A stretch of 64,000 bases of DNA, taken from positions 123,690,001 through 123,754,000 of the forward strand of contig NC_042999.1 of assembly GCF_006345805.1 (NCBI RefSeq), read 5' to 3'. The translations under genes were made by a program, and so were the position numbers. Shown here piece by piece: positions 7,380 through 64,000 of this stretch; within the stretch, counting starts at the first letter, position 1; each line of letters begins with the position of its first letter. The notes under the pieces were generated by a model. That model saw only the letters and a program-made list of their open reading frames with translations. It was not told the DNA's origin and searched no databases. This DNA is from Octopus sinensis. Its lineage: Eukaryota.

Positions 7380-7415
<36 letters not shown>

Positions 7416-7516: not shown

Positions 7517-7544
7517 GAATTGACCCAAATACTTATTTTTCATT

Positions 7545-12617: not shown

Positions 12618-12620
12618 TTG

Positions 12621-12676
<56 letters not shown>

Positions 12677-12814: not shown

Positions 12815-13040
12815 AAGGCAGTGAGCTGGCAGAATCGTTAGCACACTGGGTGAAATGCTGCTCAGCATTTCATTCAACTTTAAATTCTGAGTTCAAAATC
12901 TGCTGAAGTCAACTTTGTCTTTCATCCTTTTGGAGATTGATAAATTAAGTATAGCAAAACACGGGGGTCGATGTAATCGACTAGTCCCCTTCTCTAAAAT
13001 TTCAGGCTTTGTGCTTTTTTGTAAAAAGGATTATCATTAT
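12815..13040 (+). mobile_element. SINE family F2 copy
   Basis: Colinear with 3651-3868. Confidence 0.7.
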
Positions 13041-19089: not shown

Positions 19090-19129
19090 GGACTGCCTGC
19101 TGTGCTAACCTTGGATCATAGAGTGACTC

Positions 19130-38795: not shown

Positions 38796-38811
38796 GAGAT
38801 AGATAGATAAG

Positions 38812-38881
<70 letters not shown>

Positions 38882-39435: not shown

Positions 39436-39804
39436 ATATATGTATCTCCCTGTTATTCATTCTATTAGATTTTATTCTATTTTATGTCAACTTTATTTCA
39501 CTAGGATTTGAAATGGGAATGAAAATAAGATGAAACTAAGGGTACATATTAAAGAAAAATAACTTAAATAGTGGCTCAGGGTTATAACAGGGAGAGGATG
39601 GTGACAATAACGAGAATGGAAGATAATATTATGTAAATGGTATAGGTGAGGTTATATAAGTTATGAAAATATTGATATCAAATTACGAAATGAAATCAAG
39701 CAAATCTTTTATTTTTTTATGTTTCAGTCATTAGATTGTGGCCATGTTGGGGTACTAACTTGCAGAGTTTTAGTCAAACAAATTTGCTCCAGTACTTTAT
39801 TTCA

Positions 39805-40353
39805 TCTCTGTATATATAAAACTGAGAATGTGTGTCTGTCTGTCTGTCTGTCTGTATGTTTCCCTTAAACTTGAGAACTGCACAACCAATTTCATTCAAA
39901 TTTTATACATGCCTTACTTAGGGTCCATGTAGTTTCATCGGCAAAAAAAATGTTCAACTTCTTCCCTAGAGCGAGCCCATAGCAATATCATATCTTCTCC
40001 ACTATTTCAGTATTATGTGTTAAAAGTGAAACAAAAACATTTCTCTATTCTATGTCAGATACTTTCACTTTAACAATAAAAATAATAATAACAATTGAAT
40101 TATATGTAGTAAGTAATAATTAAAATCAAACTAAAGTATAATATAATTGTAACATAACAAAAGTAAAAATAGCAATTGGTATAAAATTGCATCAATGACT
40201 TGAACTTGAATAAGTGGTTTCACATGAATGGGAATAAATTAAAAATAAAATTAGCGTGCAGAAATGGAATAGTCCCGATGGATAATAAAAAATTAAATTA
40301 AAGAAAAGACTATTGTCTATAAAGTATACAATGTAGAGAAAAAAGATTTGAAC
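39805..40353 (+). mobile_element. Putative non-autonomous Helitron-like element, 5' part, abutting the array
   Basis: A|TCTCTGTATATATAAAACTGAGAATGTGTG(TCTG)n...AACTGCACAACCAATTTCATTCAAATTT resembles non-autonomous Helitron 5' ends. No 3' hairpin or CTRR seen before the array. Confidence 0.45.
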
Positions 40354-42281
40354 ACGTGGCTCCAAGCTATATACGTGTGTTGTGAGTTATTTTATATGTG
40401 AAAATTGAAAAAAGACGGTTAAAAGTTGTCAAAAATTGAATCGCGCGAGGCGTTTTGCCGCTGCGTGTTTGAACCTTTTATAGAAGGTGTGTCGACCCTC
40501 AAGTCATGGAGACTTACGCGGGGGTCGCCACAACAAAAAGTGACGAGTCACTTAGAATAAAAGAAGTGTTCTTTAGAAAAGAACAATTGAAAGAATACGA
40601 GAAGTTCGTCAAAAGGGAGGGTGATAGCGTGAAGCTGGTCCCGCCTGTGGAAACAATAGAAGAGAAAAATAACATCACGATAACGTATAGAACGCAAGAT
40701 AGAAACACGAGAAAACTGGTGAGAGTGACGATTGAAGAAATAGAGAAATGTCTGGGGACATCATGAAAAAAGCGACTTTTGTAGACAGAGGAAAGAAATA
40801 TGGTACGGTGGAGGTGAGATGCGCAACAAAGGAAGTGGCGGCCTCATTGGCTTCCACTGTCCTGAAAGCGGAAAATTTCACCATGTGGCCGACTTATAAA
40901 GGAAGACGAGGGGTACGGGTAAGAGTCCCAAAGGTACCCCCAAATATTAAAACAGAAATGCTGGTAACAGCCATTATTGGAGCAGCAAAAGAGGAAGTAG
41001 AAATAGGGTCAATTAAGGAGACGAACGTTGTAAATTGGAAGGGATTCGGAGTCGAGTTGTGGCTAATGGCCACAATGGAAGACATCGAAAGATTTCCCTT
41101 CCAAATAGAAATAGAAAACGAGAAGACAATTAGTGTAATAGTGGAAGGCAGAAAACCGAACTGCTACCTGTGCGGATCAAGAGGGCACATAAAAAAGGAA
41201 TGTCCGCTGTATGAATTCACAGCGGAGCAAAAAGAGACACAAAGTGGAGAGAAGGAAAACGAACACGAAGGAAAGAACAGCGAAAACAAGGAAAAGGAAA
41301 TAACGGAGAAACAACAGAGAAGGGAAGTAACAGCGCACTGAAGGAAAATGAAAACAAAGAGAAGAAGATAGTAGAAGAGGAGCAAAATTCACAGGGTGCA
41401 GAAGTAGTGGAGAAGGAGCCAAGGCAGAAGCAAGAGAAAGAAAAGGAAAGTACATTAAAGGAAAGAGAAAAAGCAGGAAAAGAACAAGAGAAGGAACAGA
41501 AACAAGAGAAAGGAAAAGATGGTATGCAAAAAGGAAAAGAAACAACAGGAAAGGAACTTAAGGCACAGGGTAGAGAGACGGCAGACAAAGAGCCAAAAAG
41601 ACAAGAGAAGGAAAAAGAAAGAAGAGAAAGCAAAAAGAGAGAAAGAGAGAAACCGAGGGAGGAGAAAAAAGAGGAAGTAAGTCCTAAGAGAAAAACTAGA
41701 GAAAACGTAGGTACGAATAGAAAATACAAATACTATGGAACGTTGATCCATCACAAGCACTGTGAGGAGATGGAAGATTTAATAAGCGCAACAAACGGAT
41801 ATACGTGGGTCAGGATGGGCACCGAATGGGAAGAAACAGGTGCACTCATCCACGAGAACGACGCCGAGGCGTTCATCGAGGCAGCTGGCGAGAACGTGTT
41901 AAAACATATGAAATGCCGACTTAAAAGGTGGCCTCGAACGATGGAACTTTACTCAGATTTGGTAGACATAATGGAGTGTATAGAATAGAAAAGGTATTGT
42001 GAAAACTTAATTTGGAAATGATAAAAAGAACTTTAAATTCTGAAAAAAAAAAAAAAAAGGAAATGTTGAACTTTGTAAAACTTTTTGAAATGTATGTTGA
42101 AAATGTAAAAAATGTTTTATTGAAAATATTGTTGACGAACAAAATTAATTGACGAAATGTAACCGCTCGATTTCGGGGATCGAGCGGGCATTACACCACA
42201 TTGTACAAACTTCATAATTCATTATTCATTCCCGATTGTATTGTCCCATCTATGTAGCCCCTAGTGGGTAATAATAAAACA
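40354..42281 (+). mobile_element. Element A copy 1: ORF1-only (gag-like) non-autonomous non-LTR retroelement, 1928 bp
   Basis: Starts ACGTGGCTCCAAGC and ends ...CCCCTAGTGGGTAATAATAAAACA. It is directly repeated at 42282-44211. It has one zinc-knuckle ORF and no EN/RT, and shares its 3' tail with element B. Confidence 0.88.
40506..41988 (+). CDS. Element A ORF1-like nucleic-acid-binding protein (~490 aa when reconstructed; frameshifts near 40762 and 41317)
   Basis: ORF-track pieces 40506-40766, 40748-41341 and 41407-41988 join into one protein. Motifs: RGKKYGTVEVR, CX2CX4HX4C knuckle CYLCGSRGHIKKEC, E/K-rich linker, ~85-aa C-terminal domain. The first break is a G4 vs G5 run compared with copy 2. 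Confidence 0.82.
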
Positions 42282-44211
42282 ACGTGGCTCCAAGCTATAT
42301 ACGTGTGTTGTGAGTTATTTTATATGTGAAAATTGAAAAAAGACGGTTAAAAGTTGTCAAAAATTGAATCGCGCGAGGCGTTTTGCCGCTGCGTGTTTGA
42401 ACCTTTTATAGAAGGTGTGTCGACCCTCAAGTCATGGAGACTTACGCGGGGGTCGCCACAACAAAAAGTGACGAGTCACTTAGAATAAAAGAAGTGTTCT
42501 TTAGAAAAAAACAATTGAAAGAATACGAGAAGTTCGTCAAAAGGGAGGGTGATAGCGTGAAGCTGGTCCCGCCTGTGGAAACAATAGAAGAGAAAAATAA
42601 CATCACGATAACGTATAGAACGCAAGATAGAAACACGAGAAAACTGGTGAGAGTGACGATTGAAGAAATAGAGAAATGTCTGGGGGACATCATGAAAAAA
42701 GCGACTTTTGTAGACAGAGGAAAGAAATATGGTACGGTGGAGGTGAGATGCGCAACAAAGGAAGTGGCGGCCTCATTGGCTTCCACTGTCCTGAAAGCGG
42801 AAAATTTCACCATGTGGCCGACTTATAAAGGAAGACGAGGGGTACGGGTAAGAGTCCCAAAGGTACCCCCAAATATTAAAACAGAAATGCTGGTAACAGC
42901 CATTATTAGAGCAGCAAAAGAGGAAGTAGAAATAGGGTCAATTAAGGAGACGAACGTTGTAAATTGGAAGGGATTCGGAGTCGAGTTGTGGCTAATGGCC
43001 ACAATGGAAGACATCGAAAGATTTCCCTTCCAAATAGAAATAGAAAACGAGAAGACAATTAGTGTAATAGTGGAAGGCAGAAAACCGAACTGCTACCTGT
43101 GCGGATCAAGAGGGCACATAAAAAAGGAATGTCCGCTGTATGAATTCACAGCGGAGCAAAAAGAGACACAAAGTGGAGAGAAGGAAAACGAACACGAAGG
43201 AAAGAACAGCGAAAACAAGGAAAAGGAAATAACGGAGAAACAACAAGAGAAGGGAAGTAACAGCGCACTGAAGGAAAATGAAAACAAAGGGAAGAAGATA
43301 GTAGAAAAGGAGCAAAATTCACAGGGTGCAGAAGTAGAGGAGAAGGAGCCAAGGCAGAAGCAAGAAAGAAAAGGAAAGTACATTAAAGGAAAGAGAAAAA
43401 GCAGGAAAAGAACAAGAGAAGGAACAGAACCAAGAGAAAGGAAAAGATGGTATGCAAAAAGGAAAAGAAACAACAGGAAAGGAACTTAAGGCACAGGGTA
43501 GAGAGACGACGGCAGACAAAGAGCCAAAAAGACAAGAGAAGGAAAAAGAAAGAAGAGAAAGCAAAAAGAGAGAAAGAGAGAACCGAGGGAGGAGAAAAAA
43601 GAGGAAGTAAGTCCTAAGAGAAAAACTAGAGAAAACGCAGGTACGAATAGAAAATTCAAATACTATGGAACGTTGATCCATCACAAGCACTGTGAGGAGA
43701 TGGAAGATTTAATAAGCGAAACAAACGGATATACGTGGGTCAGGATGGGCACCGAATGGAAAGAAACAGGTGCACTCGTCCACGAGAACGACGCCGAGGC
43801 GTTCATCGAGGCAGCTGGCGAGAACGTGTTAAAACATATGAAATGCCGCCTTGCAAGGTGGCCTCGAACGATGGAAGTTTACTCAGATTTGGTAGACATA
43901 ATGGAGTATATATAAAAGAAAAGGTATTGTGAAAACTTTTAATTTGGAAATGATAAAAAGAACTTTAAATTCGGAAAAAAAAAAAAGAAATGTTGAACTT
44001 TGTAAAACTTTTTGAAATGTATGTTGAAAATGTATAAAATGTTTTATTTGAAAATATTGTTGACGAATAAAAATAAATGACGAAATGTAACCGCTCGATT
44101 TCGGGGATCGAGTGGGCATTGCACCACATTGTACAAACTTCATAATTCATTATTCATTTTCCCGATTGTATTGTCCCATCTATGTAGCCCCTAGTGGGTA
44201 ATAATAAAACA
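42282..44211 (+). mobile_element. Element A copy 2, 1930 bp
   Basis: Near-identical to 40354-42281 with scattered substitutions, and has the same termini. Confidence 0.88.
42434..43915 (+). CDS. Element A ORF1-like protein, copy 2 (frameshifts in the purine-rich linker ~43370-43580)
   Basis: ORF 42434-43489 (351 aa, open through the zinc knuckle) plus the C-terminal piece ending at 43915. Confidence 0.82.
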
Positions 44212-44431
44212 ACCTGGAGGAAATCTAATTTTTGCGTTATTAGTAAGTTGATATATATTTTTGCTCTTGTACTATTATCTCTGTTATTATATACTGTTGG
44301 TCTACCTGTTTTTGTCTATTGTTGTCTAACGGACGAAGTCAGCCTTCGCGCGAAGACTTCGCGTTGGTGTTCCCCCCTCAGTGGGGGAAAACTACAATTA
44401 ATTGGATTTACCAAAGGCTTGTTAAAGCCAT

Positions 44432-45818
44432 ATGTTCAAGATGGAGTCCCCCATCTCTTATTCGCCCGTGACGAGCGAGGATGAATACCCGGCGTTGTCG
44501 CCAAGTAAAAAAGAGGCGTTGTCGCCAAGAAAAAAAGAAGCGTTGTCGCCGAAGAAAAAAGAGGCGGCGTCGCCCAAGAAAATGGAAAAACCAGTACCAG
44601 CATCAACTCCAGCAAAAAAATTCGCTGAAGTGGCTGGGAAAAAGATCAAAAAAATAAATATAGAAAATTTTAAAAAATTTGCAGACTGTGTAAAAAAAGA
44701 AGGCACAGAAGTGACTGTGGCCACAAACATACAAATACATGACGATATAGAAAAAAAAAGAATAATATATAAAACTTACGACACAACGAAAAAAATGATC
44801 CAAAAAATCGAAGAAAAAAAAATAGAGTCTTGTCTAAAACCTTTTATGGATAAAGTAACGTATATAAACAGAGGAAAAAGATACGGCACAGTGGAGGTGC
44901 GTTTTACTACGGAGGAGATAGCGAAGAAACTATCGATGGAGCCAATCAAAGCGGAAAACATTGTCTTACTACCATTGTATAAAGGAAAAAGGACGTCGAA
45001 AATTTCGATGAACAACATTCCGCCAGAGGCAGATGCTGAATGTCTGGTGGCAGCAGTGATGGTAGGTCTGGAGGAAAAAATAAACATCCTCCAGGCCACA
45101 GTGGAGGAAGAGAGTTCTGGAAAGGGCAGAAAATAGTGATAGCCATTCAGGCGGAGGTGCAAACACTGGAAGAAATTCCAGAAACGGTAAAGATTAGTGA
45201 AGACGAGAAAATAACAGTTTTCGTGGAGGGCAGGAAGCCGAGGTGCTTCGGCTGCGGCAAGAAGGTCATGTAAGGGCGGAATGCCAACCCCAACCCAAAC
45301 CGCAGGAAGCACCTAAGCCAAAAGAAAAAGAAGATAATGTGTCACCAGAAGCAGCGTCGGACGGCCCAGAAGGGAAGACTGAAGGTGTGGCAGTGACGGT
45401 GACAGCAGAACCAGCGGCGGAGGAAAAAAAGAGCGAGGAAAAGATAAATGAGGAGGAGTGGGCAAAAATTACCGGAAGGAAAAAAAGAAAAACGGAAACC
45501 ACCCCTCCCAGAGTAATTTTAAAAAAGAAAAAAGAGTCAATGAACTCATATATGGCCGTAAAGGCAGCAAATAGCAGACTCGGAAACGTGTTGGCAGCCA
45601 TGGCCAAAGTGGAGAAAGTAGTGGAAAAAAACGACTTTGTAATTTACAGAATAGGCCGGAAGGATTACGGGCGGATAAAGTCAGAATTCTTCCATGACGT
45701 AGGCCCACTTAGATTGGATGTGACATCTCCACATATATTCGAGGGCCTACGTCAGACTCCCCCACGAGGCCCAGAAAAAGAGTTAGAAGAACAAGAAAAA
45801 ACCGAACCACTGATATAA
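44432..45818 (+). CDS. B1 ORF1 (SPxK repeats, RRM-like region, CCHC zinc knuckle); apparent frameshifts ~45110 and ~45265
   Basis: ALSPxKKE repeats, RGKRYGTVEVRF, knuckle CFGCGKKGHVRAEC (seen intact in B2 and B4), stop TAA at 45816-45818. Confidence 0.85.
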
Positions 45819-45826
45819 GGTAAGTA

Positions 45827-48800
45827 ATGGATTACATTTATGTTGGTTGTTTGAATGTGCGCGGCCTGGGAGCAGGCTGGAAGCAAGGTCGCTTCCTGCA
45901 TGATATCAGGTCGCGTAATTTAGATGTTATTGTTGCTACAGAAACCCGGTTAGAGGGACCAAGAGGTCTACTCCCGCTGTTTGACGGCTACGAGAGTTTT
46001 TTCTCTCCTGGCAGTCCTACAGGCGGAGTGGGGTGTTGGTCCTATTAAAAAGAAACCGGGTTTCTGAGAAAAGTTTAATTTTTGCAGATACAGAAGGTAG
46101 GCTGGTCGTCATGGATTTGACGTTCAGTAATGGTAAAGTTATCAGACTGGTTGCAATTTACGCACCCAACCATACAGGGCAAAGTGATTATTTTCGTGAA
46201 CTAGAAAACTTTCTTGGTACTTCGCATTCATTAGTGGTGCTAGGAGACTTTAACACAATTTGCAAAGCGGATGTAGATTGTGTTGGCTCGCGTCCAGATA
46301 GAAAAGGCAACAGTGGCTTCATGGAACTGCTAACCCGCTTTGAGCTAGCAGATCCTTATAGGCTGGAATTTCCGAACGCTCCATTGTGGACATGGTCAAA
46401 CAGCGACGGATCTTCCAGGTCATATTTAGATAGAATACTAATTAGAAAAGTAGACAGTAAAATAGCTAAGTGTCCACAGTTTTACCCGATCAGCTACAGT
46501 GATCATAAAATGGTCACCTGTAAGCTTGACATAGATAAGGTTAAAAATAGAGGATCCGGTTACTGGAAACTTAATACGTCCTTTTGGCGATTAAGGAGTA
46601 CAAAGACCGGATTAGGAATATAATTCAGAGGGCACTATCTGGTACCATCATTAATAACAAATGGTGGTACGCCCTCAAACGAGCCATCAAGTTTCAGTCT
46701 ATTAGATATAGCATAGGAGTAGTGGCTAGAGAGGCTAGAAGGGAAACTACTCTAGTTAAGGAATTAGAGGAAGCCTTGAAAACTGGCTCTGCGGCTCAGG
46801 TGGCGTCCAAGAGACTGGTGATAAACCAGCACCTCGAGGCCAAACACATGGGCTGCATTGTCAGGGCTAGAATCCGCCATATGGGATGTGAAGGAATCAA
46901 CGCCGTGAGATGGGCCCGAGTGGTGGAAGCTCAGCATGGTAACGATGCCACGATTCGATCTTTGACGAACCAACAAGGTGAGTTGATAAACGAACCCGAG
47001 GAGATGTGTGAGGCCTTTCAGGAGCACTTCGCTCAGCTTTTCGGTGAGTGCGGCGGACTGGATAGGAGGAGGGCCTTTACGGACCTACTCGACGGGCTGC
47101 CGCGCTTATCGGGGCGAGATGCGGAGGGCTGTGAAGGGCCAATCACGCCTGAGGAGGTGGTTGAGGCAGTGGCGGACTGCGGCGCGGGCAAGGCGCCGGG
47201 TTTGGATGGTCTACCCTATGAGTTATATAAGAGTATGCCAGACTTGTTCGGGCACCTACTGGTGGAGGTCTACGCGAACTGGCAGCAGAACGGGCTTATA
47301 CCCAGATCTGTGCGCGGGGAGTAGTGACTCTCGTCAGAAAGGACCCGAGCAAGGGGGAGTGCATTGATAATTTCAGGCCCATCACTCTACTAAACACAGA
47401 GTTGAAGATTTTGGCCAAAGTGTTATCGAAAAGATTGGCGCGTGTCGCGGATGGTCTGATCGGAGAGGCACAGACATGTGCCGTTCCGGGCAGATCCATT
47501 CAGGATAATCTCCATCTAATGCGGTACACTATAGAGGGGTTTAATAGTGATTCTGGCAAGGGTGGGGCACTGGTCCAATTAGACCAATCTAAAGCTTTTG
47601 ATAGGGTCGACCATCGTTACCTGGTATCTGCCCTGGCACAGTTCGGGCTGGGCCTTGGCTTCCTCAGGTGGATTATCCAAATGTATGATAACATCGACTC
47701 GGTAGTTCGGGTGAACGGCTTCTTGTCGAAGCCGTTCAAAATCAAACGCTCGGTTCGTCAAGGGTGTCCGCTCTCCCCGCTTTTGTACGTGATGGCTCTC
47801 GAGCCATTACTGCGAAAACTGAGCGGCATCCCGAGACAGCCAGGTAATGGAAAATCAGTATCAGCGTACGCGGATGACATCACCATCATCGTAACCGAAA
47901 TGGACCACCTATGTAAAGTAGGCAAGGCCATAGAGGTTTACGAGACGGTGACAGGAGCAAAAGTTAATCGCGAAAAGTCAGTCGGCTTGCAACTCGGCAC
48001 CTGGAGAGGCAAGTCGATGCCTCCTGACAGCGTCGTGGGACGTTGGACGGAGGGTCCGATTAAACTGCTAGGGGTCTGGTTCGGTCCAGACCTCCAAATA
48101 GAGAAGAATTGGGGCGAGGTAACGAGCAAGGTGGCTGCAGTAGCCAAGACCTGGTCTTGGCGGTGGCTATCCCTGAAAGGAGGGCGGAGGTGGCCAATGT
48201 GTTTATCGCATCGGTTATCACCTACCGCCTTTCCGTCGTTCCTTGCCCTGATTCGTGGTTGATCAAGTTGGAAAGACAGCTCTTCTACTTCTTGTGGAAG
48301 GGCGGGAAACCACTTGTGAAACGCTCTATTTGCTGTCAACAACCGTTAAAGGGTGGGCTAGGGATGCCTTGGCTGATGATGCGCAGACATGCGCTGAGGT
48401 TAAGACATCTGTGGCTCTACCTGGACGGTGAACGGGTGTGGTCTTCGCTAGCAAAACTGATGTTTCCCAAGTTCACTAGTTTCGGTGGATGGGAAACCTG
48501 GCTGAATCGTAGATCGAAAGTTGGTACTTGGTACACGGAGTGTCGCAAGGCTCTCCTGCTATTCCGTCGCTCGGGCAACGCCTGCGGTGGGGGTTCCACC
48601 ACATTCTTCTATAGAGGGTTGGTAGAGGCGGAATGTGAAGATACCTTGGGGGAAACCCTAGGTCTCGACGATAATCAGCTGGCCAGTCTGTTCCGACGTA
48701 CGTTCGAGCCGAGGACATTGGACAACTTCCAGAAGTCTCTGGCATGGCAATGCTACAGAGGAGCTCTACCTGTTCAGGATAAACTCGCAAGGCACGGTGG

Positions 48801-49218
48801 CCAAGACAGTCCGATATGTCCAAGATGCGGGCGGGATAGGGAAACTGTCCCGCACGCGATTGTTCATTGTCCGGACGTGTCTGAGGTGTGGGTTTATGCC
48901 GAACACCTGTTGTCAGGTACACGAAGAGTACAGCTGTCGACTGAGTCGATTACAAAAATTGACCCACCGGATTTCCTCGTGAATGAAGGTAAGTTTCGTT
49001 TTCTCGTTGTAGTAGCAATTGCGAAAGAGGTGATATGGAAGACGAGAATGAAAGGTTTACAGTCAGGCAAGTTCATCTCCGGCCCTGGTTTGATGAATTA
49101 TTTCATCTTTCACCTGAAAAGGAAGATAGGGCTGGAAAGAATATGCCTGACTAGGAGAGTGTATGAAGAACGATGGAAGGATGTAGCACGAAAGTTGCGA
49201 GTGAAAGATACAACATAA
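45827..49218 (+). CDS. B1 ORF2: AP endonuclease + reverse transcriptase + C-terminal Cys/His domain (~1130 aa; several single-base frameshifts)
   Basis: EN motifs: GCLNVRGL, ATETRL, IYAPN, LGDFN, YLDRIL, SDHKMV, GYWKLN. RT motifs: APGLDGL, FRPITLLN, LDQSKAFDRVDH, RQGCPLSP, YADD. C-terminal CPRCGRDRETVPHAIVHC. These are typical of the L1 clade. Confidence 0.93.
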
Positions 49219-49681
49219 ATGTAATACCAAGCGCAACCAAAAGTATCAGTGGGGAGGCGGGGCTCGTGGGGTCCGAGCTAAACCCGCACCCACTCCACCC
49301 GTAACGTCTTCCGGTCTGTCCCATCATTCGATTTCTGTCCATTTATTGTAATTCATGAAAAATTTTTAAATTCGATTTATTGTAAAAACCCATTCGTGTG
49401 TCTGACCCCTCATCAGATTGTATTGTCCCATCTTTGTTCGCCCCTTGTGGGTAATAATAAAACATGGAGGAAATCTAATTTTTGCGTTATTAGTAAGTTG
49501 ATATATATTTTTGCTCTCGTACTATTATCTCTGTTATTATATACTGTTGGTCTACCTGTTTTTGTCTATTGTTGTCTAACGGACGAAGTCAGCCTTCGCG
49601 CGAAGACTTCGCGTTGGTGTTCCCCCCTCAGTGGGGGAAAACTACAATTAATTGGATTTACCAAAGGCTTGTTAAAGCCAT

Positions 49682-51066
49682 ATGTTCAAGATGGAGTCCC
49701 CCATCTCTTATTCGCCCGTGACGAGCGAGGATGAATACCCGGCGTTGTCGCCAAGTAAAAAAGAGGCGTTGTCGCCAAGAAAAAAAGAAGCGTTGTCGCC
49801 GAAGAAAAAGAGGCGGCGTCGCCCAAGAAAATGGAAAAACAGTACCAGCATCAACTCCAGCAAAAAAATTCGCTGAAGTGGCTGGGAAAAAGATCAAAAA
49901 AATAAATATAGAAAATTTTAAAAAATTTGCAGACTGTGTAAAAAAAGAAGGCACAGAAGTGACTGTGGCCACAAACATACAAATACATGACGATATAGAA
50001 AAAAAAGAATAATATATAAAACTTACGACACAACGAAAAAAATGATCCAAAAAATCGAAGAAAAAAAATAGAGTCTTGTCTAAAACCTTTTATGGATAAA
50101 GTAACGTATATAAACAGAGGAAAAAGATACGGCACAGTGGAGGTGCGTTTTACTACGGAGGAGATAGCGAAGAAACTATCGATGGAGCCAATCAAAGCGG
50201 AAAACATTGTCTTACTACCATTGTATAAAGGAAAAAGGACGTCGAAAATTTCGATGAACAACATTCCGCCAGAGGCAGATGCTGAATGTCTGGTGGCAGC
50301 AGTGATGGTAGGTCTGGAGGAAAAAATAAACATCCTCCAGGCCACAGTGGAGGAAGAGGAGTTCTGGAAAGGGCAGAAAATAGTGATAGCCATTCAGGCG
50401 GAGGTGCAAACACTGGAAGAAATTCCAGAAACGGTAAAGATTAGTGAAGACGAGAAAATAACAGTTTTCGTGGAGGGCAGGAAGCCGAGGTGCTTCGGCT
50501 GCGGCAAGAAGGGTCATGTAAGGGCGGAATGCCAACCCCAACCCAAACCGCAGGAAGCACCTAAGCCAAAAGAAAAAGAAGATAATGTGTCACCAGAAGC
50601 AGCGTCGGACGGCCCAGAAGGGAAGACTGAAGGTGTGCAGGTGACGGTGACAGCAGAACCAGCGGCGGAGGAAAAAAAGAGCGAGGAAAAGATAAATGAG
50701 GAGGGGTGGGCAAAAATTACCGGAAGGAAAAAAAGAAAAACGGAAACCACCCCTCCCAGAGTAATTTTAAAAAAGAAAAAAGAGTCAATGAACTCATATA
50801 TGGCCGTAAAGGCAGCAAATAGCAGACTCGGAAACGTGTTGGCAGCCATGGCCAAAGTGGTGAAAGTAGAGAAAAAAAATGACTTTGTAATTTATAGAAT
50901 AGACCGGAAGGATTACGGGCGGATAAAGTCAGAATTCTTCCATGACGTAGGCCCACTTAGATTGGATGTGACATCCCCACATATATTCGAGGGCCTACGT
51001 CAGACTCCCCCACGAGGCCCAGATAAAGATTTAGAAAAACAAGAGAAAACCGAACCACTGATATAA
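49682..51066 (+). CDS. B2 ORF1 (homopolymer frameshifts in the 5' third)
   Basis: ORF 50092-51066 (324 aa) with the CCHC knuckle, plus upstream pieces. Confidence 0.85.
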
Positions 51067-51074
51067 GGTAAGTA

Positions 51075-54000: not shown

Positions 54001-54469
54001 ATGCTACAGAGGAGCTCTACCTGTTCGGGATAAACTCGCAAGGCACGGTGGCCAAGACAGTCCGATATGTCCAAGATGCGGGCGGGATAGGGAAACCGTC
54101 CCGCACGCTATTGTTCATTGTCCGGACGTGTCTGAGGTGTGGGTTTATGCCGAACACCTGTTGTCAGGTACACGAAGAGTACAGCTGTCGACTGAGTCGA
54201 TTACAAAAATTGACCCACCGGATTTCCTCGTGAATGAAGGTAAGTTTCGTTTTCTCGTTGTAGTAGCAATTGCGAAAGAGGTGATATGGAAGACGAGAAT
54301 GAAAGGTGTACAGTCAGGCAAGTTCATCTCCGGCCCTGGTTTGATGAAGTATTTCATCTTTCACCTGAAAAGGAAGATAGGGCTGGAGAGAATATGCCTG
54401 ACTAGGAGAGTGTATGAGGAACGATGGAAGGATGTAGCACGAAAGTTGCGAGTGAAAGATACAACATAA
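51075..54469 (+). CDS. B2 ORF2 (APE-RT-Cys/His), single frameshift at ~53559
   Basis: 831-aa ORF 51075-53570 covers EN and RT; 53507-54469 covers the C-terminus. Confidence 0.93.
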
Positions 54470-54713
54470 ATGTAATACCAAGCTTAACCAAAAGTATCAG
54501 TGGGGAGGCGGGGCTCGTGGGGTCCGAGCTAAACCCGCACCCACTCCACCCGTAACGTCTTCCGGTCTGTCCCATCATCCGATTTCTGTCCATTTATTGT
54601 AATTCATGAAAATTTTTAAATCCGATTTTGTGTAAAAACCATTCGTATGTCTGACCCCAAATCAGATTGTTTTGTCCCCTCTGTGTTCGCCCCTTGTGGG
54701 TAATAATAAAACA

Positions 54714-57700
54714 ACGTGTTGGCAGCCATGGCCAAAGTGGAGAAAGTAGTGGAAATAAACGACTTTGTAATTTACAGAATAGGCCGGAAGGATTACGGGC
54801 GGATAAAGTCAGAATTCTTCCATGACGTAGGCCCACTTAGATTGGATGTGACATCTCCACATATATTCGAGGGCCTACGTCAGACTCCCCCACGAGGCCC
54901 AGAAAAAGAGTTAGAAGAACAAGAAAAAACCGAACCACTGATATAAGGTAAGTAATGGATTACATTTATGTTGGTTGTTTGAATGTGCGCGGCCTGGGAG
55001 CAGGCTGGAAGCAAGGTCGCTTCCTGCATGATATCAGGTCGCGTAATTTAGATGTTATTGTTGCTACAGAAACCCGGTTAGAGGGACCAAGAGGTCTACT
55101 CCCGCTGTTTGACGGCTACGAGAGTTTTTTCTCTCCTGGCAGTCCTACAGGCGGGAGTGGGGTGTTGGTCCTATTAAAAAGAAACCGGGTTTCTGGGAAA
55201 AAGTTAATTTTTGCAGATCCAGAAGGTAGGCTGGTCGTCATGGATTTGACGTTCAGTAATGGTAAAGTTATCAGACTGGTTGCAATTTACGCACCCAACC
55301 ATACAGGGCAAAGTGATTATTTTCGTGAACTAGAAAACTTTCTTGGTACTTCGCATTCATTAGTGGTGCTAGGAGACTTTAACACAATTTGCAAAGCGGA
55401 TGTAGATTGTGTTGGCTCGCGTCCAGATAGAAAAGGCAACAGTGGCTTCATGGAACTGCTAACCCGCTTTGAGCTAGCAGATCCTTATAGGCTGGAATTT
55501 CCGAACGCTCCATTGTGGACATGGTCAAACAGCGACGGATCTTCCAGGTCATATTTAGATAGAATACTAATTAGAAAAGTAGACAGTAAAATAGCTAAGT
55601 GTCCACAGTTTTACCCGATCAGCTACAGTGATCATAAAATGGTCACCTGTAAGCTTGACATAGATAAGGTTAAAAATAGAGGATCCGGTTACTGGAAACT
55701 TAATACGTCCCTTTTGGCGATTAAGGAGTACAGACCGGATTAGGAATATAATTCAGAGGGCACTATCTGGTACCATCATTAATAACAAATGGTGGTACGC
55801 CCTCAAACGAGCCATCAAGTTTGAGTCTATTAGATATAGCATAGGAGTAGTGGCTAGAGAGGCTAGAAGGGAAACTACTCTAGTTAAGGAATTAGAGGAA
55901 GCCTTGAAAACTGGCTCTGCGGCTCAGGTGGCGTCCAAGAGACTGGTGATAAACCAGCACCTCGAGGCCAAACACATGGGCTGCATTGTCAGGGCTAGAA
56001 TCCGCCATATGGGATGTGAAGGAATCAACGCCGTGAGATGGGCCCGAGTGGTGGAAGCTCGGCATGGTAACGATGCCACGATTCGATCTTTGACGAACCA
56101 ACAAGGTGAGTTGATAAACGAACCCGAGAGATGTGTGAGAGGCCTTTCAGGAGCACTTCGCTCAGCTTTTCGGTGAGTGCGGCGGACTGGATAGGAGGAG
56201 GGCCTTTACGGACCTACTCGACGGGCTGCCGCGCTTATCGGGGCGAGATGCGGAGGGCTGTGAAGGGCCAATCACGCCTGAGGAGGTGGTTGAGGCAGTG
56301 GCGGACTGCGGCGCGGGCAAGGCGCCGGGTTTGGATGGTCTACCCTATGAGTTATATAAGAGTATGCCAGACTTGTTCGGGCACCTACTGGTGGAGGTCT
56401 ACGCGAACTGGCAGCAGAACGGGCTTATACCCAGATCTGTGCGCCGGGGAGTAGTGACTCTCGTCAGAAAGGACCCGAGCAAGGGGGAGTGCATTGATAA
56501 TTTCAGGCCCATCACTCTACTAAACACAGAGTTGAAGATTTTGGCCAAAGTGTTATCGAAAAGATTGGCGCGTGTCGCGGATGGTCTGATCGGAGAGGCA
56601 CAGACATGTGCCGTTCCGGGCAGATCCATTCAGGATAATCTCCATCTAATGCGGTACACTATAGAGGGGTTTAATAGTGATTCTGGCAAGGGTGGGGCAC
56701 TGGTCCAATTAGACCAATCTAAAGCTTTTGATAGGGTCGACCATCGTTACCTGGTATCTGCCCTGGCACAGTTCGGGCTGGGCCTTGGCTTCCTCAGGTG
56801 GATTATCCAAATGTATGATAACATCGACTCGGTAGTTCGGGTGAACGGCTTCTTGTCGAAGCCGTTCAAAATCAAACGCTCGGTTCGTCAAGGGTGTCCC
56901 TCTCTCCTCGCTTTTGTACGTGATGGCTCTCGAGCCATTACTGCGAAAACTGAGCGGCATCCCGAGACAGCCAGGTAATGGAAAATCAGTATCAGCGTAC
57001 GCGGATGACATCACCATCATCGTAACCGAAATGGACCACCTATGTAAAGTAGGCAAGGCCATAGAGGTTTACGAGACGGTGACAGGAGCAAAAGTTAATC
57101 GCGAAAAGTCAGTCGGCTTGCAACTCGGCACCTGGAGAGGCAAGTCGATGCCTCCTGACAGCGTCGTGGGACGTTGGACGGAGGGTCCGATTAAACTGCT
57201 AGGGGTCTGGTTCGGTCCAGACCTCCAAATAGAGAAGAATTGGGGCGAGGTAACGAGCAAGGTGGCTGCAGTAGCCAAGACCTGGTCTTGGCGGTGGCTA
57301 TCCCTGAAAGGGAGGGCGGAGGTGGCCAATGTGTTTATCGCATCGGTTATCACCTACCGCCTTTCCGTCGTTCCTTGCCCTGATTCGTGGTTGATCAAGT
57401 TGGAAAGACAGCTCTTCTACTTCTTGTGGAAGGGCGGGAAACCACTTGTGAAACGCTCTATTTGCTGTCAACAACCGTTAAAGGGTGGGCTAGGGATGCC
57501 TTGGCTGATGATGCGCAGACATGCGCTGAGGTTAAGACATCTGTGGCTCTACCTGGACGGTGAACGGGTGTGGTCTTCGCTAGCAAAACTGATGTTTCCC
57601 AAGTTCACTAGTTTCGGTGGATGGGAAACCTGGCTGAATCGTAGATCGAAAGTTGGTACTTGGTACACGGAGTGTCGCAAGGCTCTCCTGCTATTCCGTC

Positions 57701-58596
57701 GCTCGGGCAACGCCTGCGGTGGGGGTTCCACCACATTCTTCTATAAAGGGTTGGTAGAGGCGGAATGTGAAGATACCTTGGGGGAAACCCTAGGTCTCGA
57801 CGATAATCAGCTGGCCAGTCTGTTCCGACGTACGTTCGAGCCGAGGACATTGGACAACTTCCAGAAGTCTCTGGCATGGCAATGCTACAGAGGAGCTCTA
57901 CCTGTTCGGGATAAACTCGCAAGGCACGGTGGCCAAGACAGTCCGATATGTCCAAGATGCGGGCGGGATAGGGAAACTGTCCCGCACGCGATTGTTCATT
58001 GTCCGGACGTGTCTGAGGTGTGGGTTTATGCCGAACACCTGTTGTCAGGTACACGAAGAGTACAGCTGTCGACTGAGTCGATTACAAAAATTGACCCACC
58101 GGATTTCCTCGTGAATGAAGGTAAGTTTCGTTTTCTCGTTGTAGTAGCAATTGCGAAAGAGGTGATATGGAAGACGAGAATGAAAGGTTTACAGTCAGGC
58201 AAGTTCATCTCCGGCCCTGGTTTGATGAATTATTTCATCTTTCACCTGAAAAGGAAGATAGGGCTGGAAAGAATATGCCTGACTAGGAGAGTGTATGAAG
58301 AACGATGGAAGGATGTAGCACGAAAGTTGCGAGTGAAAGATACAACATAAATGTAATACCAAGCTTAACCAAAAGTATCAGTGGGGAGGCGGGGCTCGTG
58401 GGGTCCGAGCTAAACCCGCACCCACTCCACCCGTAACGTCTTCCGGTCTGTCCCATCATTCGATTTCTGTCCATTTATTGTAATTCATGAAAAATTTTTA
58501 AATTCGATTTATTGTAAAAACCCATTCGTGTGTCTGACCCCTCATCAGATTGTATTGTCCCATCTTTGTTCGCCCCTTGTGGGTAATAATAAAACA
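54714..58596 (+). mobile_element. Element B copy 3, 5'-truncated inside ORF1, 3883 bp
   Basis: Begins at ACGTGTTGGCAGCCATGG (internal ORF1 sequence, compare ~45584) directly after the B2 terminus. The 3' end is intact. Confidence 0.92.
54955..58350 (+). CDS. B3 ORF2 (APE-RT-Cys/His), few single-base frameshifts
   Basis: ORF pieces 54955-55743, 55850-56176, 56286-56978 and 56914-58350. Confidence 0.92.
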
Positions 58597-58822
58597 TGGA
58601 GGAAATCTAATTTTTGCGTTATTAGTAAGTTGATATATATTTTTGCTCTCGTACTATTATCTCTGTTATTATATACTGTTGGTCTACCTGTTTTTGTCTA
58701 TTGTTGTCTAACGGACGAAGTCAGCCTTCGCGCGAAGACTTCGCGTTGGTGTTCCCCCCTCAGTGGGGGAAAACTACAATTAATTGGATTTACCAAAGGC
58801 TTGTTAAAGCCATTTGTTCAAG

Positions 58823-60223
58823 ATGGAGTCCCCCATCTCTTATTCGCCCGTGACGAGCGAGGATGAATACCCGGCGTTGTCGCCAGGAAAAAAAGAGGCG
58901 TTGTCGCCAGAAAAAAAAGAGGCGCTGTCGCCAAGAAAAAAAGAGGCTTTGTCGCCGGAGAAAAAAGAGGCGGCGTCGCCCAAAAAAATGGAAAAACCAG
59001 TACCAGCATCAACTCCAGCAAAAAAATTTGCTGAAGTGGCTGGGAAAAAGATCAAAAAAATAAATATAGAAAATTTTAAAAAATTTGCAGACTGTGTAAA
59101 AAAAGAAGGCACAGAAGTGACTGTGGCCACAAACATACAAATACATGACGATATAGAAAAAAAAAGAATAATATATAAAACTTACGACACAACGAAAAAA
59201 TGATCCAAAAAATCGAAGAAAAAAAAATAGAGTTTTGTCTAAAACCTTTTATGGATAAAATAACGTATATAAACAGAGGAAAAAGATTCGGCACAGTGGA
59301 GGTGCGTTTCACTACGGAGGAGATAGCGAAGAAACTATCGATGGAGCCAATCAAAGCGGAAAACATTGTCTTACTACCATTGTACAAAGGAAAAAGGACG
59401 TCGAAAATTTCAATGAACAACATACCGCCAGAGGCAGATGCTGAATGTCTGGTGGCAGCAGTGATGGTGGGTCTGGAGGAAAAAATAAACATCCTCCAGG
59501 CCACAGTGGAGGAAGAGGAGTTTTGGAAAGGGCAAAAAATAGTGATAGCCATTCAGGCGGAGGTGCAAACACTGGAAGAAATTCCAGAAACGGTAAAGAT
59601 TAGTGAAGACGAGAAAATAACAGTGTTCGTGGAGGGCAGGAAACCGAGGTGCTTCGGCTGCGGCAAGAAGGGGCATGTAAGGGCGGAATGCCAACCCCAA
59701 CCCAAACCGCATGAAGCACCTAAGCCAAAAGAAAAAGAAGATAATGTGTCACCAGAAGCAGCGTCGGACGGCCCAGAAGGGAAGACTGAAGGTGTGCAGG
59801 TGACGGTGACAGCAGAACCAGCGGCGGAGAAAAAAAAGAGCGAGGAAAAGATAAATGAGGAGGGGTGGGCAAAAATTACCGGAAGGAAAAAAAGAAAAAC
59901 GGAAACCACCCCTCCCAGAGTAATTTTAAAAAAGAAAAAAGAGTCAATGAACTCATATATGGCCGTAAAGGCAGCAAATAGCAGACTCGGAAACGTGTTG
60001 GCAGCCATGGCCAAAGTGGAGAAAGTAGTGGAAAAAAACGACTTTGTAATTTACAGAATAGACCGGAAGGATTACGGGCGGATAAAATCAGAATTCTTCC
60101 ATGACGTAGGCCCACTTAGGTTGGATGTGACATCTCCACATATATTCGAGGGCCTACGTCAGACTCCCCCACGAGGCCCAGAAAAAGTTAGAAGAACAAG
60201 AGAAAACCGAACCACTGATATAA
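58823..60223 (+). CDS. B4 ORF1 (first ATG of B1/B2 is TTG here, so the start is probably the second ATG, MESP...)
   Basis: ORF pieces 58814-59203 and 59200-60228, with the CCHC knuckle. TAA at 60221-60223 by alignment to the other copies. Confidence 0.8.
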
Positions 60224-60231
60224 GGTAAGTA

Positions 60232-63200
60232 ATGGATTACATTTATGTTGGTTGTTTGAATGTGCGCGGCCTGGGAGCAGGCTGGAAGCAAGGTCGCTTC
60301 CTGCATGATATCAGGTCGCGTAATTTAGATGTTATTGTTGCTACAGAAACCCGTTAGAGGGGCCAAGAGGTCTACTCCCGCTGTTTGACGGCTACGAGAG
60401 TTTTTTCTCTCCTGGCAGTCCTACAGGCGGGAGTGGGGTGTTGGTCCTATTAAAAAGAAACCGGGTTTCTGAGAAAAAGTTAATTTTTGCAGATCCAGAA
60501 GGTAGGCTGGTCGTCATGGATTTGACGTTCAGTAATGGTAAAGTTATCAGACTGGTTGCAATTTACGCACCCAACCATACAGGGCAAAGTGATTATTTTC
60601 GTGAACTAGAAAACTTTCTTGGTACTTCGCATTCATTAGTGGTGCTAGGAGACTTTAACACAATTTGCAAAGCGGATGTAGATTGTGTTGGCTCGCGTCC
60701 AGATAGAAAAGGCAACAGTGGCTTCATGGAACTGCTAACCCGCTTTGAGCTAGCAGATCCTTATAGGCTGGAATTTCCGAACGCTCCATTGTGGACATGG
60801 TCAAACAGCGACGGATCTTCCAGGTCATATTTAGATAGAATTCTAATTAGAAAAGTAGACAGTAAAATAGCTAAGTGTCCACAGTTTTACCCGATCAGCT
60901 ACAGTGATCATAAAATGGTCACTTGTAAGCTTGACATAGATAAGGTTAAAAATAGAGGATCCGGTTACTGGAAACTTAATACGTCCCTTTTGGCGATTAA
61001 GGAGTACAAAGACCGGATTAGGAATATAATTCAGAGGGCACTATCTGGTACCATCATTAATAACAAATGGTGGTACGCCCTCAAACGAGCCATCAAGTTT
61101 GAGTCTATTAGATATAGCATAGGAGTAGTGGCTAGAGAGGCTAGAAGGGAAACTACTCTAGTTAAGGAATTAGAGGAAGCCATGAAAACTGGCTCTGCGG
61201 CTCAGGTGGCGTCCAAGAGACTGGTGTTAAACCAGCACCTCGAGGCCAAACACATGGGCTGCATTGTCAGGGCTAGAATCCGCCATATGGGATGTGAAGG
61301 AATCAACGCCGTGAGATGGGCCCGAGTGGTGGAAGCTCGGCATGGTAACGATGCCACGATTCGATCTTTGACGAACCAACAAGGTGAGTTGATAAACGAG
61401 CCCGAGGAGATGTGTGAGGCCTTTCAGGAGCACTTCGCTCAGCTTTTCGGTGAGTGCGGCGGACTGGATAGGAGGGGGGGCCTTTACGGACCTACTCGAC
61501 GGGCTGCCGCGCTTATCGGGGCGAGATGCGGAGGGCTGTGAAGGGCCAATCACGCCTGAGGAGGTGGTTGAGGCAATGGCGGACTGCGGCGCGGGCAAGG
61601 CGCCGGGTTTGGATGGTCTACCCTATGAGTTATATAAGAGTATGCCAGACTTGTTCGGGCACCTACTGGCGGAGGTCTATGCGAACTGGCAGCAGAACGG
61701 GCTTATACCCAGATCTGTGCGCCGGGAGTAGTGACTCTCGTCAGAAAGGACCCGAGCAAGGGGGAGTGCATTGATAATTTCAGGCCCATCACTCTGCTAA
61801 ACACAGAGTTGAAGATTTTGGCCAAAGTGTTATCGAAAATTGGCGCGTGTCGCGGATGGTCTGATCGGAGAGGCACAGACATGTGCCGTTCCGGGCAGAT
61901 CCATTCAGGATAATCTCCATCTAATGCGGTACACTATAGAGGGGTTTAATAGTGATTCTGGCAAGGGTGGGCACTGGTCCAATTAGACCAATCTAAAGCT
62001 TTTGATAGGGTCGACCATCGTTACCTGGTATCTGCCCTGGCACAGTTCGGGCTGAGCCTTGGCTTCCTCAGGTGGATTATCCAAATGTATGATAACATCG
62101 ACTCGGTAGTTCGGGTGAACGGCTTCTTGTCGAAGCCGTTCAAAATCAAACGCTCGGTTCGTCAAGGGTGTCCGCTCTCCTCGCTTTTGTACGTGATGGC
62201 TCTCGAGCCATTACTGCGAAAACTGAGCGGCATCCCGAGACAGCCAGGTAATGGAAAATCAGTATCAGCGTACGCGGATGACATCACCATCATCGTAACC
62301 GAAATGGACCACCTATGTAAAGTAGGCAAGGCCATAGAGGTTTACGAGACGGTGACAGGAGCAAAAGTTAATCGCGAAAAGTCAGTCGGCTTGCAACTCG
62401 GCACCTGGAGAGGCAAGTCGATGCCTCCTGACAGCGTCGTGGGACGTTGGACGGAGGGTCCGATTAAACTGCTAGGGGTCTGGTTCGGTCCAGACCTCCA
62501 AATAGAGAAGAATTGGGGCGAGGTAACGAGCAAGGTGGCTGCAGTAGCCAAGACCTGGTCTTGGCGGTGGCTATCCCTGAAAGGGAGGGCGGAGGTGGCC
62601 AATGTGTTTATCGCATCGGTTATCACCTACCGCCTTTCCGTCGTTCCTTGCCCTGATTCGTGGTTGATCAAGTTGGAAAGACAGCTCTTCTACTTCTTGT
62701 GGAAGGGCGGGAACCACTTGTGAAACGCTCTATTTGCTGTCAACAACCGTTAAAGGTGGGCTAGGGATGCCTTGGCTGATGATGCGCAGACATGCGCTGA
62801 GGTTAAGACATCTGTGGCTCTACCTGGACGGTGAACGGGTGGGTCTTCGCTAGCAAAACTGATGTTTCCCAAGTTCACTAGTTTCGGTGGATGGGAAACC
62901 TGGCTGAATCGTAGATCGAAAGTTGGTACTTGGTACACGGAGTGTCGCAAGGCTCTCCTGCTATTCCGTCGCTCGGGCAACGCCTGCGGTGGGGGTTCCA
63001 CCACATTCTTCTATAAAGGGTTGGTAGAGGCGGAATGTGAAGATACCTTGGGGGAAACCCTAGGTCTCGACGATAATCAGCTGGCCAGTCTGTTCCGACG
63101 TACGTTCGAGCCGAGGACATTGGACAACTTCCAGAAGTCTCTGGCATGGCAATGCTACAGAGGAGCTCTACCTGCCATGTTCGGGATAAACTCGCAAGGC

Positions 63201-63625
63201 ACGGTGGCCAAGACAGTCCGATATGTCCAAGATGCGGGCGGGATAGGGAAACTGTCCCGCACGCGATTGTTCATTGTCCGGACGTGTCTGAGGTGTGGGT
63301 TTATGCCGAACACCTGTTGTCAGGTACACGAAGAGTACAGCTGTCGACTGAGTCGATTACAAAAATTGACCCACCGGATTTCCTCGTGAATGAAGGTAAG
63401 TTTCGTTTTCTCGTTGTAGTAGCAATTGCGAAAGAGGTGATATGGAAGACGAGAATGAAAGGTTTACAGTCAGGCAAGTTCATCTCCGGCCCTGGTTTGA
63501 TGAATTATTTCATCTTTCACCTGAAAAGGAAGATAGGGCTGGAAAGAATATGCCTGACTAGGAGAGTGTATGAAGAACGATGGAAGGATGTAGCACGAAA
63601 GTTGCGAGTGAAAGATACAACATAA
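60232..63625 (+). CDS. B4 ORF2 (APE-RT-Cys/His), multiple frameshifts including a non-homopolymer 5-bp insertion
   Basis: ORF pieces 60438-61541, 61414-61731, 61731-61913, 62085-62723, 62862-63389 and 63146-63625. Confidence 0.88.
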
Positions 63626-63868
63626 ATGTAATACCAAGCGCAACCAAAAGTATCAGTGGGGAGGCGGGGCTCGTGGGGTCCGAGCTAAACCCGCACCACT
63701 CCACCCGTAACGTCTTCCGGTCTGTCCCATCATTCGATTCTGTCCATTTATTGTAATTCATGAAAAATTTTTAAATTCGATTTATTGTAAAACCCATTCG
63801 TGTGTCTGACCCCTCATCAGATTGTATTGTCCCATCTTTGTTCGCCCCTTGTGGGTAATAATAAAACA

Positions 63869-64000
63869 TGGAGGAAATCTAATTTTTGCGTTATTAGTAA
63901 GTTGATATATATTTTTGCTCTCGTACTATTATCTCTGTTATTATATACTGTTGGTCTACCTGTTTTTGTCTATTGTTGTCTAACGGACGAAGTCAGCCTT
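63869..64000 (+). mobile_element. Element B copy 5, 5' UTR only (runs off the window)
   Basis: TGGAGGAAATCTAATTTTTGCG... immediately follows the B4 terminus. Confidence 0.9.

Follow-up and report, generated by a model that had tools for sequence, protein, structure and literature searches.

Head-to-tail arrays of an L1-type LINE and its ORF1-only partners in octopus genomes: a case for insertion at self-made junctions

Results

An array of two kinds of unit in Octopus sinensis

A 64,000-nucleotide stretch of the Octopus sinensis genome (NCBI RefSeq assembly GCF_006345805.1, contig NC_042999.1, positions 123,690,001 to 123,754,000 of the forward strand), hereafter the window, ends in an uninterrupted array of non-LTR retrotransposons. 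From 40356 to 64000 it consists of two kinds of unit, A and B, arranged as A-A-B-B-B(5'-short)-B-B on the plus strand with 0-3 nt between them, as established by self-BLAST and repeat finding (Table 1). A first-pass annotation of the sequence had already described this order and spacing; its extent to the window end stands, but the true start is 40356, 2 nt away from the 40354 given there. The array measures at least 23.6 kb, and its far end lies outside the window. Directly before it we find a short non-coding repeat, named host-up, that also precedes related arrays in Octopus vulgaris. We consider it probable that such arrays grow by retrotransposition into their own junctions.

Counting substitutions, A1 and A2 are 98.6% alike and the B copies 98.1-99.6% among themselves. 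Every unit ends in ...GTGGGTAATAATAAAAC, followed by nothing, A or AAC, and then directly by the next head. No microsatellite or short interspersed element (SINE) lies between the units, and Tandem Repeats Finder (TRF) shows only coding low-complexity repeats inside them. The 40 kb before the array are AT-rich and unremarkable; they contain SINE-like repeats, microsatellites and old fragments of long interspersed elements (LINEs). Unrelated old fragments of the latter sort, with a zf-RVT-like C-terminus and C-terminal pieces of reverse transcriptase (RT), lie at 10298-11012 (+), 11876-12877 (-) and 15092-15517 (+). The window is free of TTAGGG, as the first-pass annotation had stated, and no tRNAs were found in it; no Rfam family, including the 5' HDV-like ribozyme, was detected in the heads or the window.

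Indels between copies (40356-44213 and 44214-63867) are nearly all single bases in runs of G, C or A. They may be uncorrected long-read or assembly errors, and the frame breaks of the window are not to be taken as real. Such indels suggest a noisy long-read assembly, and could lend some credit to the idea that the array is an artefact of a looped or mis-joined repeat; the first-pass annotation had named an assembly artefact as a finding that would refute its reading. However, private substitutions differ from copy to copy, which disfavours a collapsed or looped assembly; the internal short unit and the passage from A to B also argue against it, and the same architecture recurs in an independent chromosome-level assembly of O. 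vulgaris, GCA_951406725.2. We find an assembly artefact hardly credible.

Table 1. Units and conserved features of the window array (window positions), with the composition of the related loci.
Feature	Positions	Strand	Description
host-up	39804..40355	+	552-nt non-coding anchor directly before the array; start ATCTCTGTATATATAAAACTGAGAATGTG(TCTG)n, end ...AAAAAAGATTTGAACAC
A1	40356..42283	+	ORF1-only unit; head GTGGCTCCAAGCTATATACGTGT, tail ...GGGTAATAATAAAACAAC
A2	42284..44213	+	ORF1-only unit
B1	44214..49463	+	Full-length autonomous unit; head CTGGAGGAAATCTAATTTTTGCGT, tail ...GGGTAATAATAAAAC
B2	49464..54712	+	Full-length unit; best-preserved B copy
B3	54713..58595	+	B unit without its first 1373 nt
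B4	58596..63867	+	Full-length unit; extra 24-nt repeat in the ORF1 N-terminal region
B5	63868..64000	+	First 133 nt of a further B; array continues beyond the window end
Shared 3' box (GATTGTATTGTCCC.TCT.TGT..GCCCCT.GTGGGTAATAATAAAAC)	42233..42280; 44163-44210; 49416-49463; 54665-54712; 58548-58595; 63820-63867	+	
Palindrome TCGCGCGA	40441..40448; 42369; 44346; 49596; 58728		~85-130 nt into every full-length head
Window array			host-up, two A, five or more B
L005			host-up, A, A, B
L007			host-up, A, B
L008			host-up, eight A', B; ORF2 of B 98.8% identical to that of the window
L010			host-up, three A', B
L006, L009			Mixed arrays of related families, including further ORF1-only families

B, an autonomous LINE of the L1 superfamily

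Unit B (5.25 kb) codes for an ORF1 (open reading frame 1) and for an ORF2 with endonuclease, RT and zinc-finger parts. Pfam recognizes Exo_endo_phos (E 9e-14), RVT_1 (E 1e-31) and zf-RVT in ORF2, where the motifs GDFN, SDH and YADD are present. The closest solved relative of this protein is human L1 ORF2p (E 5e-62, residues 6-826), R2 reaching only ~1e-24. In the four-copy consensus, ORF1 is open at 464 aa and carries a CCHC knuckle motif, with no Pfam match to zf-CCHC; ORF2 measures ~1131 aa and is continuous only if a single-C insertion at consensus position 3106, found in B2 and B3, is accepted. In B2, ORF1 ends at 51066 and ORF2 occupies 51075-54469 with one frameshift near 53530. With an endonuclease followed by RT, and a separate ORF1 upstream, B is by its predicted proteins an autonomous LINE of the L1 superfamily, that is, a non-LTR element of the type with an apurinic/apyrimidinic-like endonuclease (APE).

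Searches with ORF2 of B returned distant relatives only, at 59% identity to one contig and 50% to Argonauta hians; among annotated octopus proteins, no close copy was found with either ORF2 or ORF1.

B is modular. Between the window (44214-63867) and its O. vulgaris counterparts (L005:11203-16221, L007:11165-16332 and, on the minus strand, L006:6197-1010), ORF2 is 91-99% identical, the 5' untranslated region (UTR) and ORF1 only 60-80%. This suggests repeated exchange of the ORF1 module. The N-terminus of ORF1 also contains a 24-nt tandem repeat, GGCGTTGTCGCCAAGAAAAAAGA, that encodes SPKKKEA-type repeats and varies in copy number (44491-44582, 49741-49831 and 58873-58980, with one more repeat unit in B4).

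A, an ORF1-only partner under selection

Unit A is 1.93 kb long and contains one ORF1 of ~494 aa with a CCHC knuckle, matched by Pfam zf-CCHC, and no RT. In A1 the frame extends over 40507-41988, interrupted by two 1-nt indels. In A2 it starts at 42434, stays open for 351 aa and reaches ~43916 past two deletions, of 2 nt and 1 nt, that flank an in-frame insertion of 3 nt. The frameshifting indels of A1 and A2 fall at different places.

Between loci and subfamilies, the ratio of nonsynonymous to synonymous substitution rates (dN/dS) of the A ORF1 is 0.13-0.19, including comparisons with A', a second ORF1-only family described below; propagating A lineages thus need the ORF1 protein. Over 208 aa, the A and B ORF1 proteins share only 34% identity, while the last 48 nt of the two units are 92% identical and the ~25-nt 5' head is homologous. 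Since the termini are shared and the proteins are so far apart, A is a separate ORF1-only lineage with B-type ends and no recent deletion product of B. To judge from its sequence, it is a true gag-only partner, not debris. The division into an autonomous B and an ORF1-only A, proposed by the first-pass annotation, is correct.

Other octopus families and Argonauta retain the core of the shared 3' box. A search for covariation in a 3' stem-loop gave a stem of just 3 bp and a single compensatory pair, which does not warrant a claim.

At the other end, the palindrome TCGCGCGA (in the context TTCGCGCGAAGG or ATCGCGCGAGG) is conserved in the 5'UTR of A, A' and all B subfamilies despite diverged UTRs, and is also found in the heads of L005, L007 and L008. 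It is reminiscent of an E2F-type site.

A dispersed anchor precedes arrays at five loci

A search with the A ORF1 matched O. vulgaris proteins at 94-96%, which assigns the window to Octopus, and these served as the entry to six loci of GCA_951406725.2, L005 to L010. At four of them (L005, L007, L008 and L010), spread over three chromosomes, host-up lies directly before an array, 89-96% identical to the window copy. Its 5' edge is sharp, and the DNA further upstream differs at every locus. Neither terminal inverted repeats nor coding capacity were found in host-up. What the first-pass annotation took for a unique flank is therefore a dispersed repeat common to five loci.

These five loci, the window included, share one order: host-up, one or more ORF1-only units, then B. 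Where both ends are visible the arrays are short, 7-9 kb at L005 and L007. The ORF1-only units of L008 and L010 are A', and a third family, E, with a distinct tail (...GGGTAATAAAGAAATAG), occurs in L006; several more are present in L009. A, A' and E are all without ORF2, and in the sampled arrays ORF1-only units outnumber autonomous ones.

The six O. vulgaris arrays are situated at 39.2/128.6, 13.9/41.2, 12.6/118.9, 64.2 and 115.8/225.7, and 96.9/147.5 Mb; their distance to the chromosome ends is 12-116 Mb. L010 is flanked by a patatin-domain gene and an acetyltransferase-domain gene, and L009 is likewise situated among ordinary genes. This bears on the suggestion of the first-pass annotation that the array, HeT-A/TART-like in architecture, is possibly a subtelomeric or centromeric domain. 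On such a reading it would be built by addition to chromosome ends or kept as a structural domain, as HeT-A/TART/TAHRE are in Drosophila. Such a structural array would be in keeping with the single strand, the two components, the gag-only member and the length of the window array, whose far end we do not see. Yet the related arrays are interstitial, two of them are bounded on both sides within 7-9 kb, and the window lacks TTAGGG. Moreover, at each of the five host-up loci it is the 5' ends that are turned to the anchor, a polarity that the first-pass annotation had pointed out for the window as opposite to that of HeT-A if the flank is centromere-proximal, and B encodes an APE endonuclease and uses a sequence-defined site, including an internal one (see below). 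A telomere- or centromere-like role is thus very improbable.

Several features of these loci deserve a record. L009:1-39929 (O. vulgaris OX597818.1:96863404-96903332) is a mixed array between two haemocyanin gene models, overlapping the span of one; its units, one autonomous and at least four ORF1-only, belong to other families and have heads (AT)CATCGATACTC and tails ...GGGTAATAAA(G/A)AA. In L006, the 3' part of E forms an inverted duplication (7000-8320, palindrome centre ~7830), from which two mixed head-to-tail arrays run outwards on opposite strands. At L010:17006-17500, B is cut off at B position 2369 and followed by a ~60-nt minisatellite with runs of (TTAGC)n. An element of ~45 nt, CATGCACTAGCACTATGACCCGGCAACGACGGGTCTTTAATGCTAG, is placed between (TA)n in both orientations near arrays (L005:16380-16452, L007:16490-16571 and, in reverse, L010:8440-8500) and is probably a small interspersed repeat. 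Finally, the O. vulgaris annotation covers L005:10001-31523, L006:10001-21333 and L007:10001-20335 with multi-exon genes of 10-21 kb (P0036, P0038 and P0039): these models are almost certainly artefacts that stitch together ORF1 fragments of different units. Distant relatives from metagenomes (L003, L004) gave no usable information on tails or junctions.

Different families occupy the same site

The host-up copies of the window and of L008 are ~96% alike, whereas the ORF1-only families behind them, A and A', reach only 71%; one site has thus received different families. At L010, the unit adjoining host-up (L10u1) differs by 0.23% from the third unit of L008 (L8u3), 51 Mb away, and by 7.5% from its own neighbours, which indicates a recent independent insertion at the host-up junction. 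In both L008 and L010 it is the youngest clade that adjoins host-up. In L006, young A and B copies are joined to the tails of other families, and no host-up is present in the DNA examined there.

Junctions and the proposed insertion site

The host-up end reads ...GAACAC and the A-type tails end in ...AAC or ...CAC, while the heads of A, A' and E start with GTG; the junctions consequently read (A/C)AC·GTG, where the dot marks the join. The B consensus has a single AACGTG, at position 1374, and B3 begins exactly there. Under random truncation the chance of this coincidence is ~2e-4, and we disfavour the reading of B3 as a random 5' truncation, its edge coinciding with the sole AACGTG in B.

The neighbouring unit, B2, is a mosaic. 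Its 5' 1.4 kb are 99.5% identical to B1, and its 3' 3.9 kb, ~2% off, are the most divergent segment of the array; B3 in turn is 99.6% identical to the matching part of B1. This pattern points to insertion of a B into an internal site of a full-length B. In the simplest account, the 5' part of B2 and B3 would once have formed one full-length copy, which a divergent B entered at the internal pseudo-site, homology serving to close the 5' join. Alternatives are microhomology capture or a gene conversion that stopped at the B3 edge. A higher-order duplication, in which B1-B2 was copied to B3-B4, was rejected, as B2 and B4 are only 98.3% identical against 99.6% for B1 and B3.

In L006, a 5'-truncated E unit is preceded by ...CCCAC·GTGT and, before that, by E-internal sequence: the tail-to-head junction shows a 4-nt target duplication, GTGT. 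At the junctions of the window no target-site duplication (TSD) was seen. Candidates for host target sequence were discarded after alignment of all heads. AATTCCAGTCT in L005 and L007, and the 21-nt leader before A1 and A2 in the window, could be read as TSDs but proved to be homologous 5' termini of the elements; the downstream flank of L005 and L007, named host-down, is a B-head remnant.

On the minus strand of L006, a B is preceded by TTGAACAC, a match to the last 8 nt of host-up. A 22-nt filler, ATTAAGGGAGACCCTTGAACAC, lies between a B tail and a B head (L006:6223-6197, minus). The first 15 nt of the filler match B-like ORF2-internal sequence, as at the truncated B-like copy L006:12333+, and the last 8 nt equal the host-up end. 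Tentatively, the filler may stem from 5' transduction from a source copy beside host-up, or from template switching.

Joins like those of the window, with 0-3 extra nt (A or AAC) and no target duplication to be seen, could also arise if the units were not added one by one. During a single target-primed reverse transcription, the RT, on reaching the 5' end of its template, might jump to the 3' end of a second RNA (A or B) present in the same particle and so lay down a concatemer; end-to-end template jumping by the R2 RT is established in vitro, and template switching could be reflected in the mosaic B copies. Concatemers of this sort fit poorly with units of apparently different ages in one array (0.2% to 7.5%), with a 5'-short B3 in mid-array at a sequence-defined site, with the 4-nt duplication of target DNA in L006 and with the use of one junction by different families at different loci. 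We rate single-event concatemers as improbable.

A model of array growth, and what weighs against it

The array anatomy, the shared termini, the recurrent architecture, the junction motif, the selection on ORF1 and the near-identical copies at distant loci are in our view probably the outcome of endonuclease-dependent, junction-specific retrotransposition, which recreates its own target downstream of a dispersed anchor and is accompanied by some local recombination. The endonuclease of B would nick a short site of the (A/C)AC·GTG type, the choice of the protein that reads this site being presumptive. Reverse transcription would start precisely at the tail, with no poly(A). A would supply its own selected ORF1 protein and borrow the endonuclease and RT of B through the shared 3' box, a presumed dependence in trans. 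Each tail-to-head junction of this type, as well as the anchor end ...GAACAC, would recreate the site; the B heads, which begin ATGG or CTGG, fit it only loosely. New copies would keep landing at existing junctions, in an order of events that we can only suppose, and produce gap-free same-strand arrays downstream of the anchor, which local unequal recombination or gene conversion would further reshape.

Several observations weigh against this model. B-head junctions read AAC·ATGG or AAC·CTGG and those of older subfamilies AAAAC·AATTCC: the junction motif is loose, and partly a mere reflection of the element termini. In the loci examined, neither an empty host-up copy nor the right-hand end of a young array was seen. 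Annotated ORF1 proteins were the way into every locus; the sample is therefore biased, and solo copies could be common. The order of ORF1-only units and then B is identical at all five host-up loci, which a random choice of junctions does not predict; polar insertion at the junction with host-up, or shared ancestry, may lie behind it. In L008 the copies cluster by position (u1-3 and u5-8, 4-5% apart, with u4 a hybrid) and neighbours are 0.2-0.8% apart. Last, L005 and L007 share host-up and ~230 nt past the last B at 91% identity, similar to that of their A units. The ~230 nt are a B-head remnant followed by (TA)n and a small repeat, and the pair looks like a segmental duplicate. Duplication and recombination at the DNA level also act, then, and could account for part of the pattern.

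Taken to its limit, this argument gives a rival that does entirely without junction-specific insertion: an ancestral composite of host-up, A and B would have spread by segmental duplication, and its units would have been multiplied by unequal crossing-over in the manner of a satellite. The likeness of adjacent units, the hybrid in L008, the L005/L007 pair and the constant order are all in its favour. It does not sit well with host-up copies ~96% alike that precede ORF1-only families 71% alike, nor with a unit that resembles one 51 Mb away and not its neighbours. The edge of B3 at the unique internal AACGTG, the 4-nt TSD in L006, the young A and B copies set there in another context without host-up, and the purifying selection on ORF1 count against it as well. 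DNA-level amplification as the sole process seems to us unlikely, though it is the strongest of the alternatives, and we retain junction-specific retrotransposition, with local recombination as its complement.

Discussion

If the arrays are built by insertion at their own junctions, they show a way for a LINE to stay within harmless sites, its target being the joins between its own copies. The first-pass annotation had mentioned a self-made safe harbour, which is close to what the junctions show and survives as a reading. The system would also be a second, independent case of selected gag-only elements beside an autonomous partner, and could be compared with HeT-A/TART free of the confounding role of the telomere. 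A short defined site and precise tail-primed initiation would make the endonuclease and RT tractable for studies of target choice in L1-type elements. Annotation of cephalopod genomes is affected in any case, as gene models of O. vulgaris span arrays as multi-exon "genes" of 10-21 kb.

A wider picture can be drawn, though we hold it to be on the doubtful side. A diversified octopod LINE clade that carries its own insertion site in the combined sequence of tail and head, along with a dispersed 552-nt non-coding landing pad that is perhaps a promoter, might form self-extending safe-harbour arrays in which several ORF1-only families, evolving independently and under purifying selection, outnumber the autonomous element. 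This would be a multi-partner community, cooperative or parasitic, architecturally convergent with the telomeric arrays of Drosophila but interstitial, and the host might use it, for instance as a uni-strand source of small RNA.

Literature searches on LINE arrays in octopus and cephalopods found nothing specific. LINEs of the Tx1 clade, as documented by Kojima, insert into specific transposons, microsatellites or RNA genes, have these targets in common with non-autonomous partners, and show tandem sequential insertions (PMC4494074). Examples are Tx1L in the piggyBac-type Tx1D of Xenopus, Tx1-Mar in Mariner-N4_AMi of crocodilians, with SINEU partners, and Kibi and Koshi in microsatellites. The octopus elements resemble them in the APE-type endonuclease, the defined non-poly(A) tail, the specific site on a dispersed repeat and the non-autonomous partners that share the target. 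Target-specific insertion with a defined 3' tail, a Tx1-clade trait, is seen here in that all units end ...GGGTAATAATAAAAC(AAC) and the same host-up site is used at five loci, and membership of B in the Tx1 clade is plausible. In contrast to known Tx1-clade LINEs, the octopus elements would remake their site from their own tail and head, at least 7-9 units follow one another without intervening target DNA, and the partners, instead of being SINEs, code for ORF1.

Relatives of B in Argonauta hians (BAAFZT010000021.1, L001:12700-13000 and 18800-19100) and at L007:28140-28230 of O. vulgaris end in ...TGTGGCTAATAAAGAAA(C), followed by (ATCT)n; in Argonauta an identical 150-nt sequence comes after the (ATCT)n. 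They look like a sister family that targets microsatellites and has kept the 3' box, and their position next to (ATCT)n fits a target-specific clade of Tx1 type. An (AGAT)21 microsatellite beside a SINE-like repeat, at 38797-38881 of the window and 0.9 kb upstream of host-up, is a site of the Argonauta type, unoccupied here.

With HeT-A/TART/TAHRE of the Jockey clade, the octopus arrays have in common the head-to-tail, same-strand mixture of gag-only and gag+pol units, the shortened copies and a selected gag-only member kept beside gag+pol (A, A' and E). Arrays of the Drosophila type form chromosome termini and, as elements are added to a free end, turn their 3' ends towards the proximal, older DNA, whereas none of the six O. 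vulgaris loci is terminal and the heads face a fixed anchor at the five host-up loci. The octopus arrays are moreover probably endonuclease-dependent, 5'-anchored by a repeat and of the L1 superfamily, with no evidence of a host function.

HAL1 (half-L1) of mammals derives from L1, keeps a conserved ORF1, has no ORF2 and relies on autonomous L1. It is the closest analogue among ORF1-only derivatives of L1, sharing with the octopus units a selected ORF1, the lack of ORF2 and a 3' end common with the autonomous partner. However, HAL1 copies are dispersed and not arrayed, and octopus has several ORF1-only families (A, A', E and others), with an ORF1 only 34% identical to that of the partner.

Repeated insertion at a regenerated target is also known from tandem R1 (type I) arrays outside Drosophila rDNA and from the telomeric MoTeR1/MoTeR2 arrays of Magnaporthe, in which an RT-coding element is paired with a short non-autonomous one sharing its ends. 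Those arrays, too, are head-to-tail and made by site-specific retroelements, but a remnant of the target (28S or telomere repeat) separates their units, or they are located at telomeres, and MoTeR belongs to the lineage with a restriction-like endonuclease. The octopus arrays belong with site-specific Tx1-type LINEs and, for their gag-only partners, with HAL1 and HeT-A; they stand apart from the Tx1-type systems in a site that is probably remade by the elements' own ends, and in partners that code for ORF1.

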